From Klebsormidium nitens (taxonomy: Eukaryota > Plantae > Klebsormidiophyceae), in NCBI GenBank assembly GCA_000708835.1, contig DF237388.1, positions 1-64,000 on the forward strand: a stretch of 64,000 bases of DNA. The letters are read 5' to 3'. This document shows positions 1 through 9,317 of the stretch, one piece after another. Under the pieces are notes generated by a model. It made no database searches. It was not told the origin of the DNA and saw nothing but the letters and a program-made list of their open reading frames with translations. A program made the position numbers and the translations under genes. Each line of letters opens with the position of its first letter. The first letter of the stretch is position 1.

Positions 1-661
1 CAGTCATTTTTGGTACTAAATCTTGTTTCCTGTCATTTTTGCATTCTGCATGTCAGAATGAGGTCAAGAATAAGGGTTAATGTTTGAGAATGGGGCTGAA
101 TGCACAGAAATTAGGCTTCATTCAGTCAAACCTAGTCCTTAACCCCCAAACACTATTATTGGAGGGATGACCAGAGCCTTGGCGGGACTAGTGGAGACCG
201 TTGCCTACTGCGAGATATCCGAGCCTTGCCAGTCTGTCCTGTATCGACACCCACGTCTCAAATCAGGCGGGAACTGCATAGGGCATAACAGTACTGTTGA
301 GCGAGAACATTCGAGGATTCGGGTTTCTTTGGACTCAACGGGATGTTTACGCGCAGAGGCAAAGCGGAGGCAGAGCAGAGGTTACAATGTTGAAATCCGT
401 AGAGCAGAAGTCACAAACCCGGGTGTCAGAAACCCAAAACTCATGATTTGATGTCATAAACCAATCCGAAGGTCTGACTCCTGACGTTGACATTCTTAAG
501 AAAGAGTTGAGCTCTTCAAGGACGTTACGTTTGACTGAAAAGAAGGGCGTTCCGGGCGTGCAGATATCCTGAACGAACGCAAGATAGGGTGCAAAGTACC
601 CCATTCGTCCAGAGACCGAGCGCTCTCGTAAGGAAGCGCCAAGTTGGGAAAGTGGTTTTCG

Positions 662-3600
662 TTACGGAAGAAGAAGAACTCTCTGTTTGCCAACCAGCGG
701 AGGCGCTTGACGAGGCCGACCCGGCTTGGCCGGGTCAGGATCACGGGTTCCACGTAACGAAAACGTTTCATCCGGCTTATCCATCTTCGAAGGGGCCAAC
801 CAGATGCGCGAATACTCGGCAACCCGCCCCCGCGGAGCGCAGGAACGCATTCCGAAGCGACACGTGGGGAAACCCTCACCCTCCAGCTGCGCGTCCTTCC
901 AGGACAGCCCCGCGCCCGCGGCCGCGCCGCGCTCCTCGGCGAAGAAGGTGACCGCGCGCATCTTGCGCGGCCGCGGCCAGAACACCGCCGGGAAGCTCTC
1001 CCCGCTTTCGAGGGCCTCCCAGTACAGCTTCCCGACGTACGCGGCGAGCGACGCAAGGGACGCGACGATGGACTGCAGGAAGATCGCGCGGTCGATGTAG
1101 ATACGCGTGCCCCGGGAGCTGCCCAGTACGTATAGCACCGACTGGAAGATGGACTGGGGCAGCGCCCGGAGGAGGGTGTCCAGGTGCTGCCGCGAGGCGA
1201 GGTACTCCTCCATGCCCACGACCGCTGCGGGAAAAGGAGACGGGGTGGTTGATTCTCAATCGGAAGTGCGAAGACGCTTCTTGAACGAAGTGGTTTAGGT
1301 TTGAGCTGCTCATTTTAGTCGAGCGCGCAAAGGTCGTTGATTTCCAATCGAGAGCGGCGAAGATTACCTCTCGATGTCAGGTTGAGTAAGCGCAAATTGA
1401 CCAAGGAACATGCTCAGGGCAGAAGCCAAAGTTGAAAACCTACTCCCGACAGATGACGCGCTCCGCACTCAAAATGCCCGTATCATACCAATTCCATGAT
1501 TCAACCACAAATAGAGAGCTGTGTGCGAAGACGCTCACTGAACGAACTGGTTTAAGGGTGAGCTGCTTCTTCTGGTCGAGAGCGCGAATCGCTCACGCGA
1601 ACTGTCAGCCCTTTGTATCAGAAACCTCTAGCAAAAGACACTCCTCAAGTTTCGAGGATCCCCACTGATCTGACCTTGTTCTGTCTTTCAAGACAACGAC
1701 TAAAGGTTCATCTATGATATGAAGAAAAGTACGAAGCACAGGACGTCTTTCGAGCGGGTGACAAACACGTGGACGGTTCAGTTGGATGATGACGTCAGCG
1801 GTTGGTAAAACCAGGGCACAGTGTGAGCGGGTGATCTGAGCAGGCGAACGAGCATGTGGGAGGGCGTCCGGCCAGAAGAGGGTAGCCGGGGTTGGGACGG
1901 GGTCACGGGAAAAACTAAAGACGGAGGCACGGCCTAAGAGAGAGCGACAAAAAGCATCAGTACCTGTCCGGAACCCATACGGGTTAGCCGCAACAGTGCT
2001 CAACTCGCCATTGAAAATTTAAGCAGAGTTTATACAAACCCAAGACATCAGGCCCTTCCGAACTCACAGACCCGTCTGCTGAGTAACCGCGTAGAGACTT
2101 CGGCGATAAGCCCACGTAGGGCTTTTGCAAAAGGGAGAGCAGACCCCGAAAGGAGGGTCACAAGTAGAATTTCTGCCCGGTCGTAAATCACTGCAGGGTG
2201 TTCGTACGCCCTCCAAAAGGCGACAAGCAGAGCTTGAGCACACCCTTAGGATGTGGGAGCACAGATTTTCCCAGTGTTCTGTCCCCTACTTAAAAACATT
2301 CTCCATTTGAGACAAGGAAACTCAGAGGTTGGGGACAAAATGGGGGGACTGAAAAATCCCTAGCCTCAGATCGAACACGAGCCGAAGCTAGCGCCTCACC
2401 GGGCCCGGAGTCGAGGTCACGTGGCGCGCGCGCGAAGCACCCGCAGTTGGCGGCGATCCCCAGTACGTCCAACATGGGGAAGCGCAGAATGGCGAGGGGC
2501 CACAGGTAGAGCAGCTTCAGCCAGCGGCCGCCCTTCAGCAGCGGGGCGCCCTCGTACAGGGTCCTCCGAGACCACCGCTTATTGCCGAGGATATGGGGCG
2601 GCCACATCACGAACCGCAGCCCGGGGGGGCAGGACGGCAGGCCGAAGATGCCCCCCGAGACGGCCCAGGCGTCCGCCGCGAACAGGCCGGCAACTAGGAA
2701 CGGCGCGACGATGGACGGCAGGAGAATGTCGCGCGGCCAGGCGGCCCCCACTTGGCGCAGGACGGTGACGTCAGTGTACAGGTCGTAGTACGGCAGCAGT
2801 GACGTCAGGACGCCCCAAAAGTAGAGCGCGGCCTTCAGCGCGGCCGCGAGACGCGGGCGCTTGTCGAGCCCGGAGGCTCCGTTCCCGGCCCCGGCGCGCG
2901 CGCGCATCAGGCGCTGCGCGAGCGGGCACGCGACGAGCAGGAGCGCGAGGGCCGCGGCGAACGCCCCCCACGCGATCGCGACGGTGAGGCGCGCGTTAGG
3001 TTCCCGGCAGAGGTTCCCGTTCTGGACCCCAGTAAAGGAAACCCCGGTGTAGGTTAGGCTCCCCGGACCCAGGTCGATCTTGTCCAAGAAACCGCTGTCG
3101 TTAAACAAGTAGTTACCCTGGGCGTTTGTGAGGTAGGGGGGCAGCGGGCGACCGCCGGGGGTGCTCGGGGAAACGAGGACCGGGGAATCGCCCCGGATGA
3201 AAACAGAGATCTTGCTGAGGCAGATCTCCTCCCGGGTTCTCTGGGTTAAGCGCGCCCCTGTGCCGATGATATCGACCACGCACCCCTCTTTGCACCCCTC
3301 CCAGAAGCGGATGTCGATCAACCGGGGAGCAGCCCCGACCAAGGTCACCACCTTGCACCCGGCAGGGACGTGCGACAGGTCAACGGTTGACACCACCGTT
3401 TTGGAAACCCCTAGCCGCAGGCTCGTCAGGTTGGTGGCGTTAAGGAGGTACTGGGGAACCGGGTAGTCGAACCCGACGAGCCGGCGGGTTGTGAGGAAGT
3501 TCGAGGGGGGTGGGCCGTTCAGGCTGTTCTCGCTCAGGTCCAAGTTGTTGAACAGGGTGCAGTTTCTGGCAAAGGTCCGAGGGATCCCCCCGGTTATGCT

Positions 3601-6600
3601 GTTGAAGCTGAGGTCCGCCGTGGGGACGCAAAGGTCGTCCGGGAGGGGCCCCGAGAGGCGGTTGTGGGAGAAGTCTAGGAGCTCGGGTCCGGACGTCCGA
3701 TATCCGAGGTACAGAAGCAGCTTCGGGGGGACAGGACCGGTGAAGCTGTTGTTCCGGAGCCGGATGTTTTTGCAGAAGGGGAGGTTGGCGAGGGAAGGGG
3801 GGATGGGTCCCGACAGGCGGTTGTTGGATACGTCAAGGTCTCTCAGAATGATGGAAACGCTGCCTAGGAGGGGGAGGGGGCCCGACAGGTTGTTGTTGGC
3901 GAGGCGTATGGTCTCGATGGTGACGTTCGCCATCTCCACCGGGATCGGCCCAGAGAGGCTGTTGTTGGAAAGGTCGAGCGTGTTATAAAAGTAGCCCTGG
4001 CTGCCGCCGGGGAAGAGTCTCGGGGAGAGGGCGCCGGATAGGAGATTATTGGCTAGGTTGAGGGACAAACCGAGTGACGAGTTCCGGGTCCCAAAACTGA
4101 CGGGAATGGGGCCTGTCAGTCGGTTGCTGGAGAGATCGATGCCGTATGTAGTGACATTGGGCAGGAAGCCCAAATCTTCTGGGATGCTTCCCGACAGCTG
4201 GTTCGAAGCTAGCGTGAGCTCCTCCAAGTCGACGAGCTTGCTGAGATCTGGGATCGGGCCCGTCAGGCTGTTGTTGTTGAACCTCAATATGCGCAGCTCC
4301 GAAAGGTTTCCCAACACGGGAGGAATGGGCCCGGACAGGTTGTTCAACTGGAGAGTCAAACGGGCGAGGCTCGAGAGCTTGCCAAGGGGCGGGGGAATGG
4401 GTCCGTCGAGGGTGTTGTTCGAGAGGTCTATCTCCCGCAACTGTAGGTTGTCCCCCAATTCGAAAGGAATGGGCCCCGACAGGTTGTTGCTCGAGAGATC
4501 CAAGTAGGCGAGGTTTGCCATGGATGCAAACAGGCCGGGGGGGATGGGACCACTCAGGTTGCAGCGCGGGAGTTTGAAGGTGGACAGCTGGGTTAAGTTG
4601 CCGAAGCTCGGGGGAATTGCACCCGACAGGCTGAACAACTGACCCAGGTTCAGGATTCTGAGCCGGGACAATCGACCGAGTTCCCCAGGAAGGGGCCCCG
4701 TCAACTTCTGAGCTCCCGCCAGGTTGAGGACCTCCAACCGTGCCAGGTTGCCAAGCTCCGGGGGGAACGGCCCGGTGAGTTCTCGGTTACCGGCGCCGTC
4801 CAGGATCTTGGAGTCGGTGCCCAGGTTAAGGACCCGCAACCGGGTTAAGCTGCCCAGGCCTGGCGGGATAGGCCCCGTAAGATTGTCGTCTTGCAGGTAG
4901 AGCTCTTCCAGGCGGGCTAAGGCGGAGAGCTCCGGGGGGATCGGACTCGAGAACTCGAACATTCCGGACACGTCCAGGACGGTGAGGTTGGACAGGCGTC
5001 CGAGTTCCGGGGGGATGGGTCCGACGAGACCCCTCGAGGCGTTGGGGTACTTATCGTCGTATACTCCCTGGTTGTTGGACACGTTGAGCACGCGCAGGCT
5101 GCGCAGGTTGCCCAGCTCCCCTGGGATCGGCCCCGAGAAGTTGTTGCCCTGGAGGTGGAGCTCCTCCAGGGCGCCGAGAGCGCCGAGCGCCCCGGGGATC
5201 CCCCCCGAGAAGCGCTGCTCGCGCAGGTCCAGAATGCGCAGGTTGCGCAGAGCGCCCAGTTGCGGGGGAACCGGGCCGGTTAACGGGGTGTACTGGCCGT
5301 ACACGGCAGTGCCCCGGGCGTATAGCTTCCGCAGGTTGATTAGTCCGGCCAGCGCCGCCGGGAGGCCCCCGGCAAAGCGGTTGAAGGAGAGGTCCAAATA
5401 CTGCAGGTTACTAAGGCCGCCCAATTCGCCCGGTATGGTCCCGTTCAGGTAGTTGCCGCGAAGCCCCAGGTAAGACAGCGCGGTTAGGTTGCCAATCTCT
5501 GAGGGGACAGGACCCGACAGCCCGTTAAACGACAGCTCCAGGAGTTGGAGTTTCCGCAGGCGCCCGAACTCCGAGGGAATGGGGCCAGAGAGGGCGTTGT
5601 CCCACAAGAAGAGGGTTTCGAGGTTGTTTAGCGCGCCGAACTGCCGGGGGATGGAGCCGTTGAGATAGTTGGCGGCCAGGTTGAGGTAGGTTAAGAAGGG
5701 AAGGCCGCCGAGGCTTGCGGAAATGGGGCCCGTGAGGTTGTTGTTGTACAAGTCGAGCTCCGAGAGCCGGGTTAGGTTCCCAAGCTCAGTCGGCACGCCG
5801 CCAGTAAGGCTGTTGTTATAGAGGTAAAGATAACCCAGGTTGCTCAACTTGCCCAGGGTCGGGGGAATGGGCCCGGTTAGAGCGTTGACGGCGAGGTTAA
5901 GCACGGCAAGAGCCGTGAGGTCGCCCAATTCCGGGGGGATGCCTCCGGTGAGCTGGTTGTCGAACAATTCTAACCACCGGAGATTGCTCAACCGACCCAG
6001 CTCGGGGGAAATCCCGCCCGACAGCTGGTTCGAGAAGGCGTCCAGATACTGCAGGGAAGCCAACCGGCCCAGCGCCGGGGGAATCGTGCCGTTCAGATTG
6101 TTGACGGAGACATTCAGCGTCTGGAGACGGGGCAGGTTGCCGAGCGTCGCAGGAATGGGCCCCGACAGCGAGTTGACGTCTAGATCGAGCGTCTCCAGGA
6201 GCGACAGGTTGCCTAACTCGAGGGGGATCCCCCCGGTGAGCCGGTTCCCTGACAGGTCCACTCGCAGGAGCTTGCCGAGCCGACCCAGTTCCGCCGGAAC
6301 GGGTCCCGTCAGGCGGTTGTACCGGGCGTCCAGAACAACCAGGGAGGCGAGTCCCCCGACCTCCTGGGGGATGGCACCCGTGAGGCTGTTGTTGTACACG
6401 GACAACCGGACCAGCCGGGTTAGGGTGGCAACCAGGGCGGGGGGAATGGGCCCCGAGAGTTGGTTGTCGTACAGGTCCAAGGACTCCAGCACGGATAGCT
6501 TGCCCAACTCCCCGGGGATCCCCCCCGACAGCCTGTTTCCCGACAGGGTTAGAAACCTCAGGTTCGTCAGGTTCCCGAGCTCCGGGGGAATGGGGCCGGT

Positions 6601-6819
6601 GAGCGTGTTTGCGGCTAGGCTTAGGAGGGTTAGGTTGGTTAAGAGGCCCAGCTCGGGGGGGATCGGCCCGGTCAGGCCCCGGTTGTCGAGAGCCAGCGTC
6701 TGTTTCGTGCGGATGTCTCCCTGCACCAAGGCGGTGATATCGTCCATCGTTGCCGCGCGGGTTCCGCCGATAAGCGCCAGCATGAAGATGACGGCTTGGC
6801 GCAGGCTGATGAGCGTCAT
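662..6819 (-). CDS. LRR receptor-like multipass membrane protein: signal peptide, 43 plant-type LRRs, Cys-containing juxtamembrane region, TM helix, XK-like multipass domain; no kinase; ~1660 aa
   Basis: Exon 1 is 6819-2400: ATG in gcagccATG, hydrophobic MTLISLRQAVIFMLALIGGTRAA, then 43 LxxLxLxxNxL(S/T)GxIP repeats counted in the 2290..6876 ORF. Donor G|GTGAGG at 2399. Acceptor tctccttttcccgcag at 1225. Exon 2 is 1224-662 (phase 1: GP-A-VVGMEEYL...), ending in TAA at 664-662. Spliced length 4983 nt is divisible by 3. Confidence 0.9.
1266..1588. repeat. Diverged ~65-bp direct repeat pair inside the LRR-gene intron
   Basis: 1266-1330 gtgcgaagacgcttcttgaacgaagtggtttaggtttgagctgctcattttagtcgagcgcgcaa versus 1523-1588 gtgcgaagacgctcactgaacgaactggtttaagggtgagctgcttcttctggtcgagagcgcgaa. 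Confidence 0.75.
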
Positions 6820-9317
6820 GGCTGCCCACTTGAGTGAGGACTGCAGAGAGACGACGAAAGGTGTGGTGAGGTCCAAGGCTTTGAACGGCAGTTGCTTCCC
6901 AGTTGCTTGGATCAGAAAACTCAGTGGATGAGGGAACAGGGCACTAGAAAATCTAGAGTCTGCTCAGAAACTTGTCACGGGGTCAAGGGAAGTGGAGTCG
7001 GACACACACGAGTCGAGTCCCGGGATGCTCCTGCAGCTTTTACTCCCTTGAGTGAACATTCTCTGTCACTTGTGCTTGTATTCGTGCGGCTGAGAGGTAC
7101 GACTACTTATGGGCACCCTGAGCGGGACAGTGGCAGATGTTGGCAGGCGCACAAAGGTAGAACAAGGACGACCACGAGTCGCGCAAGCACCCATATGCGA
7201 AATGTTCAGAGATTGCTAGGATTGACTCGGTCAAAATTTTATCAAACGGCAGGGGCAAGCAACTAGAAAGCGTGGACAGGGACCTTTTGTAGACCTGCAA
7301 GAAACCACCGCTGACCACTGACCCCTCGTTATCTCAATCTCTTGGTAGTGTAAGCGCTGTCACATGAGTGTTATCATCCCTTCAATGTCATCCTCTTTGC
7401 ACTCTATCGGCCCACAACCAAACTGCGCAGAAGATTACATCTCCCAATAGTGGATTCACTGAAGGACAACATCCTGAGAAGGAATTGGAAACAATGTTGT
7501 TTGTGAATGCTACTGCACATGTTGGGCCAGGGACATGGCGAAAGCATAAAGATTCTCAGTCATAAGTCACTAATACATGGGGTTGTGAAAGCCCACCTTG
7601 AGTTACCGCCGTTCCTCCAGAAAACTAGATGTACTCAGGACTCAGAGTAAACTGCCCGTTTAGTACTGCTGTGAGAGAGAGAGACCTGATTAGATCCTTA
7701 ATGGATGTACGTGCGCATCAAATAAGCTCAAACACTGCGAGCTTCTCCAGGAAAAGTGGGGTTTGGTCCTGCTGTGAGGTGCATACAGAAGGCTGCAGCA
7801 ACTTCACGTTTCTTGTTGGAATGGTGGTGTTCGGGCTCCATTACCTGTGGGACCAAGCACATGCACCTAGTGGAAGAGAACCTTGCCCAATGAAAAGCGG
7901 GAGTCTGCTCCTTGTCATGGGAGGCTCAGCAAGAAGTGGTGGTAAGAGTAGAATTGCAAGCTTTGGCTGTTTGGAAGCGTACCGGCACAAGACTTGGATA
8001 GGTGATCAGGCATTATCAGGGAACATAGGCTATCAGAACATGGGAGGACCTTGTCATGTTTGCAGTTACGCAAGTCTTGTGATCTTAGGATACTCTTTTA
8101 ACTTGCTGATCCTCACAGGCCTTTCAGAGCTACGCAACATCCTCGGGGCTCACATGAGAACAGAAAAGAGCGAGCTTTTCTATGCATCATCAGAATCCTA
8201 TCTTTATGACCTTGTTTCCAGGCTTGGACACGTGTCCTAGATAGGAGTAATCACGAGCTTCAGAGCTTGACAAGCCGTACAATCTCTGGACATGAGGCCC
8301 TTGAAAATAACAAAAATCATCACTGTAATTTGCAGAAGTCGAAAACAAACACAGGCGTCTCCTTTCCAGAAAGAAAACCCGTACGGCCTTCAAGGCCCTA
8401 GGTCCTCCTCTTCTTCCTGATCACTACGGCCAGCTTTCAACTCTGCTATAGGTAGTATCAAATCTATCATCACTTGCTCCCAACAATTTCCGAGAGGTCA
8501 GACACCACACTGCATCAGTGCTTGTTGGACCAAGAAGAGCCCAAGCTCAACCAAAGAAGACAATGTTCTCACAATAAAATTAGGACTGTCTTGACAATCC
8601 CTCCAGTGGCAAGTACCGCTCAAAACCTTGATCAGTAACTGTCAAGGAATCAGTTCATTGCCGAGTCCCTTGAGGGCAAGATTTGGGAATCGCAGCGGCA
8701 TGACAGCTCACCTCTTCAACAGTGACAGGTTGCAGAAAAGCTCTCAGGTGGAACCATACGACGTCGCAGCGACGCAGATGATTGAAACCCCAGTATATTG
8801 ACGCCGTGTCCCGCCTGCCCCGGCGCCGGGTGTACTCCAAACATGGAAACGACCTGCTGCAACTCGCATCAATTGAAGCTCAGATCTTCCAGAAGAAGCG
8901 CAACCAGGCCTTCAATCTGCTTCCACAATACCAAGAATACCAAGCTTCTGCACGGGGTGCAAAGCCGTATCGCCCGAAACCTTTGGTTGCCCGTCAGTGT
9001 CAGGGCGTTCGTCCGCCAGCGAACGCGGTGTTCTTAGGAGACGATACCGCCCGGGACCGTCCTGCTCCCAAAGCTGCCAGCCGGACTCAGGATCGAGAGT
9101 TTTGACTCCTGAGACTCGAGCTGAGAGAAAAGTACCTACTGAGTCTGCGAGTACCAGGTGTAGCCTGCAGCCTGTGCAGGGAGGCTTGATGTCGACATCA
9201 CGATGTCGCAAGCTAGCCTGGCTGAGTCTGTTTTCGGCGCGCGAGATCGACTTTATTCGTGCCAGATATGGCGAACGGAATCCTAAAAGACCCTAGACAT
9301 TAGCAGAGTTTGGAATT

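Follow-up and report, generated by a model that had tools for sequence, protein, structure and literature searches.

An expressed LRR receptor-like protein of Klebsormidium ending in a membrane module that resembles the N-terminal half of Xkr proteins

The stretch analysed here, called the window below, comprises 64,000 nucleotides (nt) of the genome of the streptophyte alga Klebsormidium nitens (assembly GCA_000708835.1, contig DF237388.1, positions 1 to 64,000). At its left end, on the minus strand, lies a gene for a protein of about 1591 residues, which consists of a signal peptide, about 27-40 plant-type leucine-rich repeats (LRRs), a conserved juxtamembrane ectodomain, one transmembrane (TM) helix, named TM0 here, and a membrane module of about 220 residues. 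We consider it likely, by a modest margin over the contrary, that this is an LRR receptor-like protein ending in a module like the N-terminal (ND) repeat of Xkr proteins, and that paired half-modules could give a membrane output. The parts of this proposal are not equally firm. That a receptor ectodomain and an ND-like half module are joined in one expressed polypeptide is very likely, and a true relation of the module to the Xkr ND is fairly probable, while lipid scrambling or thinning on pairing is a possibility that we put forward tentatively and regard as rather unlikely. The module looks, and may work, like the ND half of an Xkr; we do not call it an Xkr, because the sequence test with the family profile PF09815 failed and the second repeat is absent. 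The protein is also neither a standard receptor-like protein (RLP) nor a receptor-like kinase (RLK).

Fold and motifs of the membrane module

Xkr proteins are built of two repeats in pseudo-twofold symmetry, ND (TM1-4 and the intramembrane helices IH1 and IH2) and CD (TM5-8 and IH3) (PMC12334663). The algal module was compared with them through AlphaFold models of two relatives, made with a family alignment in which the two pieces of the window's gene stood as rows. Model 1 covers residues 470-780 of the relative P0001, that is TM0 and the module (pLDDT 83.2, pTM 0.79; TM0 is a long helix with pLDDT 96). Model 2 covers the module only of the relative P0016, which is about 31-38% identical to P0001 (pLDDT 83.5, pTM 0.75). 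In a VIA-align comparison with 48,161 representative chains of the PDB, rXKR9 (7p16_A) ranks first for both models, with Z 10.5, root-mean-square deviation (rmsd) 3.5 and 155 aligned residues for model 1, and Z 9.5, rmsd 3.7 and 152 aligned residues (chain 4-193) for model 2. It is followed by hXKR4 (9boj_B), second for both (Z 9.6 for model 1; Z 7.9, chain 109-365, for model 2), and hXKR8 (8xej_X) is fourth for model 1 (Z 7.9) and sixth for model 2 (Z 6.7, chain 7-182). Residues 3-207 of model 2 align to the ND repeat of the XKR chains alone. Among the top 477 Foldseek chains, the same model scores Z 9.6 with 7p14, 9.5 with 7p16 and 8.4 with 7dce (hXKR8), and the next chain is LRRC8A with 6.2. 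Hence, the two relatives are predicted to share the fold of the ND repeat. That every XKR representative leads the ranking or comes close to doing so for two divergent models, with the same half each time, would be hard to ascribe to a generic helical bundle.

A third and weaker line of evidence for the XK likeness comes from language-model features. For the P0016 module the first neighbour cluster carries PF09815 (score 0.90, with 199 of the 256 features in common). Of the 30 matches of this module, 16 belong to the PF09815-carrying set; the exon 1 piece of the window scores 0.85 to a PF09815 cluster.

Membership of the XK-related family is not found with the sequence profile. PF09815 gives no match at E 10, either for the pieces of the window's gene or for 25 family members and pieces. 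The family profile, run with hmmsearch against PDB sequences with XKR8, XKR9 and XKR4 among them, returned nothing at E 10, and phmmer with the two pieces returned nothing relevant among the PDB sequences. The original prediction had proposed an XK-like half domain from XK-family motifs; this likeness stands at the level of the fold, where no solved structure, or hardly any, matches better than XKR9, XKR4 and XKR8, and does not stand at the level of the sequence profiles. The outcomes named there as fatal to the idea, an unrelated fold with no XK match or transcripts that leave exon 2 unused, are not what the fold comparison and the transcript joints returned.

The ND repeat of Xkrs carries a 'charged stairway', formed by D125, D129 and E313 in hXkr4 and by D26, D30 and E141 in hXkr8, and TM3 of hXkr4 is kinked at P316 (PMC12334663). 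In the 25 aligned relatives and pieces, the TM1 columns D-x-x-T-D hold the first Asp in 16/19, the Thr in 16/19 and the second Asp in 16/19, and the TM3 columns E/R-S-L-P-Q hold Glu in 13, Arg in 9 and Gln in 1 (Glu or Arg in 22/23), with Pro in 23/23 and Gln in 22/23. Judged from the aligned sequences, these family motifs are beyond chance. The register of model 1 places the TM1 aspartates on hXkr8 26/30 and hXkr4 126/130, and that of model 2 on hXkr4 125/129 and hXkr8 25/29; both registers were taken from the first aligned residues with no gap assumed within TM1 and are range offsets, not a residue-level superposition. In the models, D-x-x-x-D of TM1 would thus fall on the stairway pair within one residue. 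The window copy has both aspartates, D1365 and D1369, within GVLTSLLPYYDLYTDVTVL (residues 1355-1373; residue numbers count from the start of the open frame at 6876). R1512 stands at the position of the TM3 Glu of Xkrs, as the original prediction had pointed out, so that E-x-x-P of Xkr reads R-x-x-P here.

We note that the E-type sequences at this TM3 column (codon 1168-1166 in the window) come mostly from one closely related subgroup, and that the window copy is one of the nine R-type sequences. In P0007 both TM1 aspartates are missing and the Glu is kept.

The other parts of the module are listed in Table 1. The motif (E)VWGAWP is conserved before TM2 and reads QVGAAWP in the window copy. 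In the loop between TM2 and the kinked helix a beta-hairpin around R-x-W-x-W-P-P is predicted in both models, in model 1 with strands 130-133 and 143-146 at a low-confidence pLDDT of about 60. Exon 2, which encodes HLDTLLRALPQSIFQSVLYVLG…IFLQSIVASLASLAAY, corresponds in the alignment to the module's second half in every relative. We propose the following topology: the LRRs would lie outside, and TM0 would cross inward to the basic loop; TM1 would run from inside to outside and TM2 back, followed by the cytosolic loop and the kinked helix, a candidate counterpart of Xkr IH1/IH2; TM3 would then run outward to a short outer loop (GSSRATRIYID), and TM4 inward to a cytosolic tail about 47 residues long. 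This topology would equal that of the Xkr ND repeat.

Table 1. Features of the gene and its product in the window. Positions are those of the window.
Feature	Position	Strand	Remarks
Coding exon 1	2400..6819	-	First in-frame ATG at 6819; GT donor at 2399; holds signal peptide, LRR ectodomain, juxtamembrane ectodomain, TM0, TM1, TM2, cytosolic loop and kinked intramembrane helix
Signal peptide, probable	6754..6819	-	MTLISLRQAVIFMLALIGGTRA; proposed from reading the sequence
LRR ectodomain, plant-type	3481..6633	-	Pfam LRR_1 7e-92, LRR_14 3e-67, LRR_8 4e-58
Juxtamembrane ectodomain with cysteines	2989..3480	-	…FLDKIDLGPGSLTYTGVSFTGVQNGNLC…; ~165 residues
TM0	2920..2982	-	VAIAWGAFAAALALLLVACPL, residues 1299-1319; hydropathy maximum 2.45
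Basic loop, probably cytosolic	2919-2848	-	Directly after TM0
Module TM1	2752..2847	-	Carries D1365-L-Y-T-D1369 (2784-2770)
Module TM2	2656..2730	-	Hydropathy; helix in both models; aligned in relatives
Loop after TM2	2527..2655	-	Cytosolic by the proposed topology; conserved R-x-W-x-W-P-P
Kinked helix	2446..2526	-	…LLYLWPLAILRFPMLDVLGIAA; helix of model 2 breaks at the conserved Pro, H95-103 and H105-123
Intron 1	1225..2399	-	GT..AG, phase 1, in frame; AG at 1226-1225
Coding exon 2	880..1224	-	TM3, loop GSSRGTRIYID, TM4, cytosolic tail; in frame with exon 1
TM3	1204-1121	-	R1512-A-L-P1515-Q
TM4	1090-1013	-	In exon 2
Intron 2	274..879	-	GT..AG, phase 1
Exon 3	1..273	-	Last codons V-P-A; stop TGA 265-263; 3' untranslated region runs past the window's left end

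Gene structure, transcription and family

The gene is intact, spliced and transcribed. Its open frame runs on the minus strand from 6876 to 2400 (1492 codons), and the peptide segments quoted in the original prediction were all found on this strand. To follow the transcript, 24 public sequencing runs were screened by the share of sampled words of positions 500-3100 that they hold. Eight of the 24 hold 60-98% of the words, introns included, and thus look like DNA. A second group holds 27-44%, about the exon share, and four of these runs (X9, X10, X13 and X18, from four studies) were used for contigs; that they are RNA is the tool's guess, for which the intron-less joints argue. The contigs were placed on positions 1-3400, a range outside which the 5' part of the gene lies, and they cover the part of exon 1 at 2400-3400 without a gap. 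Contigs of all four runs contain the joint 1224|2400, skipping 1175 nt, in agreement with the intron 1225-2399 and the use of exon 2 that had been predicted; on the plus strand this intron ends as CT..AC, i.e. GT..AG on the strand of the gene. The joint 273|880, which skips 606 nt, is found in contigs of X9, X13 and X18 (3/4 runs). The joints are exact in the contigs, with zero mismatches and the intron sequence absent.

With both joints applied the frame reads …KDAQLE-V-P-A followed by the stop at 265-263. The spliced frame has 1610 codons and a single terminal stop, which gives 1591 residues from the ATG at 6819, and it ends about 47 residues beyond TM4. The polar tail that the original prediction had read from 879-662 is therefore part of intron 2, and the true tail ends in …KDAQLEVPA. 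We also considered that a second XK repeat might be encoded in exons past the left edge of the window; this was ruled out, since the spliced frame reaches its stop 8 nt past the start of exon 3. With a transcript-supported stop there, no second XK-type repeat can be encoded downstream, and none is present in any full-length relative, so the predicted lack of the second four-helix repeat is borne out.

Two further observations concern the contigs. The interior of intron 1 is touched by contigs of low depth, at 1417-1577 in X9 (depth about 3) and at 1506-1886 in X10 (depth 4.4), which could stem from precursor RNA before splicing, from carried-over DNA or from a small transcript of its own. Contigs of 2809 nt (X9) and 1334 nt (X10) match the 32 nt at 3206-3237 alone, with one mismatch and unlike flanks on both sides; they are probably transcripts of paralogues in which this piece of the juxtamembrane ectodomain is conserved.

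The ectodomain contains 27 strict LxxLxLxxNxL units by a regular-expression count, with degenerate ones interspersed, and 34 N-x-S/T sites in residues 1-1295. Pfam on the long open reading frame (ORF) and on both exon pieces finds LRR families only and no kinase domain, and it finds no family for the juxtamembrane ectodomain; with the 25 family members, too, the matches are confined to LRR families. The predicted design of a kinase-less LRR ectodomain, one TM helix and a polytopic module is thus upheld, the further helices appearing in both the hydropathy profile and the models.

An exhaustive HMMER search of 1.84 billion proteins with the exon 1 membrane piece (2401-2868, minus strand) retrieved 16 representative relatives, the best of which is P0001 (7e-28, 52% identity). 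All relatives that could be traced come from K. nitens (GAQ84842.1, GAQ78274.1, GAQ78170.1, GAQ81339.1, KFL_000650330) or from a K. subtile transcriptome. A word-index protein search with the TM region stayed blank with long and short length frames, and gave matches only with the family alignment. Pfam LRR matches are present in 7 of the 10 relatives scanned; P0007 and P0012 have no Pfam match, yet they carry the juxtamembrane ectodomain. This block, …F(L/V)D.IDLGP.G.AYTGV.F..VQ.GNLC.NPEA…, also occurs in P0001, P0014 and the gene at locus L003, and seems to travel with the half-XK module. Relatives that extend upstream of the module have the juxtamembrane ectodomain and TM0 in common, and the module is present in all. 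The family ends about 40-110 residues (mostly 40-70) past the helix pair …LPQ..FQ..Y.LGSSRATR.YID..IF.QSI..SL…, with the exception of P0015, which breaks off before TM3.

P0001, on a 61-kb metagenome contig, is a single uninterrupted ORF across the site of the window's intron 1 and therefore supports the spliced reading independently. P0016 had been a candidate for a stand-alone module; this was rejected, since 119 nt upstream of it there is an LRR ORF of 840 residues that includes the juxtamembrane domain and TM0, and the P0016 gene has the same design with an intron at a different place. Intron sites vary among the paralogues. The module of P0001 is free of introns (L001 3001-5343), that of the P0016 gene is preceded by one which separates the TM0 loop from TM1 (L003 5880-6000), and in the window's gene a first intron falls between the kinked helix and TM3 and a second just before the stop.

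P0006 (GAQ78274.1) and P0008 (GAQ78170.1) are named 'LRR receptor-like serine/threonine-protein kinase FLS2' in public records, a label that NCBI gave them on account of their LRRs. In both, Pfam finds LRRs only and no kinase, and a half-XK-like module stands at the C-terminus; public records thus label some paralogues as FLS2 kinases despite the absent kinase domain. Hence, we are dealing with a multigene family, restricted so far to Klebsormidium, whose common design is an LRR receptor followed by the membrane module. The claim that the architecture lies outside the standard plant RLK and RLP classes holds as far as the architecture goes, but the locus is not unique.

With plant RLPs (CLV2, Cf-9, RLP23) and LRR-RLKs (FLS2) the Klebsormidium protein shares the signal peptide (here read from the sequence), extracellular 24-residue plant-type LRRs, the juxtamembrane ectodomain and a TM helix, and with RLPs also the absence of a kinase. 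However, an RLP ends in a short tail after its one TM helix, and an RLK has a kinase, whereas in the Klebsormidium protein TM0 is followed by four further hydrophobic helices and the kinked intramembrane helix. LRRC8/SWELL1 likewise joins a four-TM module to an LRR domain and gives weak fold matches (Z about 6); there, however, the LRRs are C-terminal and cytosolic, that is in the opposite order and on the opposite side, and the fold is pannexin-like, with Z far below the XKR values. The likeness to Xkrs (XKR8, XKR9, XKR4, XK) lies in the modelled ND fold and order of TM1, TM2, intramembrane helix, TM3 and TM4, in D-x-x-x-D on TM1 and E/R-x-x-P on TM3, which by range offsets would occupy the stairway and TM3 proline-kink positions, and in an N-terminus of the module that would be cytosolic, given LRRs outside and the crossing of TM0. 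Unlike the two-repeat Xkrs with their eight TM and three intramembrane helices, the algal module is single-repeat and lacks the CD repeat, IH3 and the caspase-cleaved C-terminal helix. It follows a huge LRR ectodomain and one additional TM helix in the same chain, in a streptophyte alga, has no sequence similarity to Xkrs detectable by HMMER or Pfam, and in the window copy has Arg for the TM3 Glu.

Proposed mechanism and alternatives

We suggest that the ectodomains, by a ligand or constitutively, would bring two chains together. ND and CD of Xkrs appear to share one orientation and to pack around an axis normal to the membrane; by this geometry, the half-modules of two chains could come together as an Xkr-like unit. 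Its output may be a change of the bilayer, for example local thinning or lipid scrambling near an acidic TM1/TM2/TM3 vestibule, or the recruitment of a partner, instead of phosphorylation. Within the membrane, the TM3 Arg of the window copy could form a pair with the aspartates of TM1. The lipid-relevant, membrane-thinning vestibule of Xkr4 lies in ND, in TM1-3 with their acidic residues (PMC12334663), and it is this half that the algal module resembles.

Several points weigh against this proposal. The models are those of relatives, which are 52-56% and about 30-42% identical to the window protein over the module, and their Z values of 8-10.5 lie below the caution line of the tool (about 13) for helical bundles. 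Plain Foldseek of model 1 against the PDB gave, among the matches listed, only chance-level ones (E > 0.4), and shape searches of the ESM Atlas with both models gave unrelated bacterial proteins with TM scores of 0.35 or less. The motif register depends on range offsets, and neither HMMER nor Pfam links the module to XK-related proteins by sequence. Dimerisation and lipid activity are themselves proposals, and monomeric hXkr4 is active (PMC12334663), so a two-repeat unit may not be what matters.

Part of these points feed the most serious alternative, in which the module is a lineage-specific helical bundle that came to look like ND by convergence and serves as an anchor or docking platform, with RLP-style signalling through a partner kinase or co-receptor in the membrane. 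Kinase-less plant RLPs use adaptor kinases, the sequence link to PF09815 is lacking, and for model 1 four-helix bundles and Piezo repeats trail by no more than 1-2 Z units, at values all under the helical caution line. Convergence would, however, have to account for XKR9, XKR4 and XKR8 at or near the top for two models and always with the ND half, for the most conserved polar residues coinciding with Xkr stairway positions, and for language-model neighbours that are XK-related clusters; we hold it to be an unlikely explanation, though one to be taken seriously. The two conserved TM1 aspartates admit another reading, namely that several modules assemble into a pore which conducts or binds ions and the protein is a ligand-gated, channel-like receptor, with the Asp pair as a cation site and a logic like that of four-TM large-pore subunits. 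Such subunits (LRRC8, pannexin, connexin) are among the weaker fold matches, and PMC12334663 cites a proposal by others that the equivalent hXkr4 residues bind Ca2+. These matches have Z 5.6-6.5 and high rmsd, well below XKR, and the window copy has Arg where Xkr has Glu; we consider an oligomeric pore very improbable.

Slightly less probable still is that the main task of the module is to dock a VPS13-homologue bridge-like lipid-transfer protein at the plasma membrane, by way of the hairpin that follows TM2. In human XK a hairpin within L2, its second cytosolic loop, binds the PH domain of VPS13A (PMC9436381), and the predicted hairpin of the algal loop would be its parallel; but the latter is of low confidence, and among animal Xkrs the hairpin is specific to XK/XKR2. 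The fusion might, finally, be an artefact of the gene model, or this copy a dead pseudogene. The guessed RNA status of the runs leaves some room for this, yet it is contradicted by the intron-less contigs joined at exact GT..AG sites in four studies, by a spliced frame without interruption and by the presence of this fusion in relatives, in one case within a single ORF, and we consider it hardly credible.

Meaning for LRR receptors and the Xkr fold

Work on XK-related scramblases has mainly dealt with animals, and those Xkr structures that have been solved contain two repeats. We found no description in the literature on Klebsormidium together with XK-related, Xkr or scramblase, or on XK-related proteins in Viridiplantae. 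What is new, by that search, is an LRR receptor-like protein whose membrane output module had no earlier description, so far in Klebsormidium alone. It would add an output module to the known LRR receptor repertoire, which otherwise signals by a kinase or by a short tail with an adaptor.

If a streptophyte alga near the land-plant lineage has a one-repeat version, this would also bear on the origin of the Xkr fold. In the boldest form of the proposal, which we regard as improbable, the proteins would be ligand-controlled half-scramblases, and the single-repeat module would represent, outside animals, the XK-related fold as it was before duplication (or as it became by fission). The family makes it testable whether the ND vestibule alone, or an ND dimer, is enough for membrane thinning or scrambling, as the Xkr4 work suggests for ND. 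If the half-scramblase idea is true, Klebsormidium would possess an algal receptor whose direct output is lipid asymmetry, not phosphorylation.

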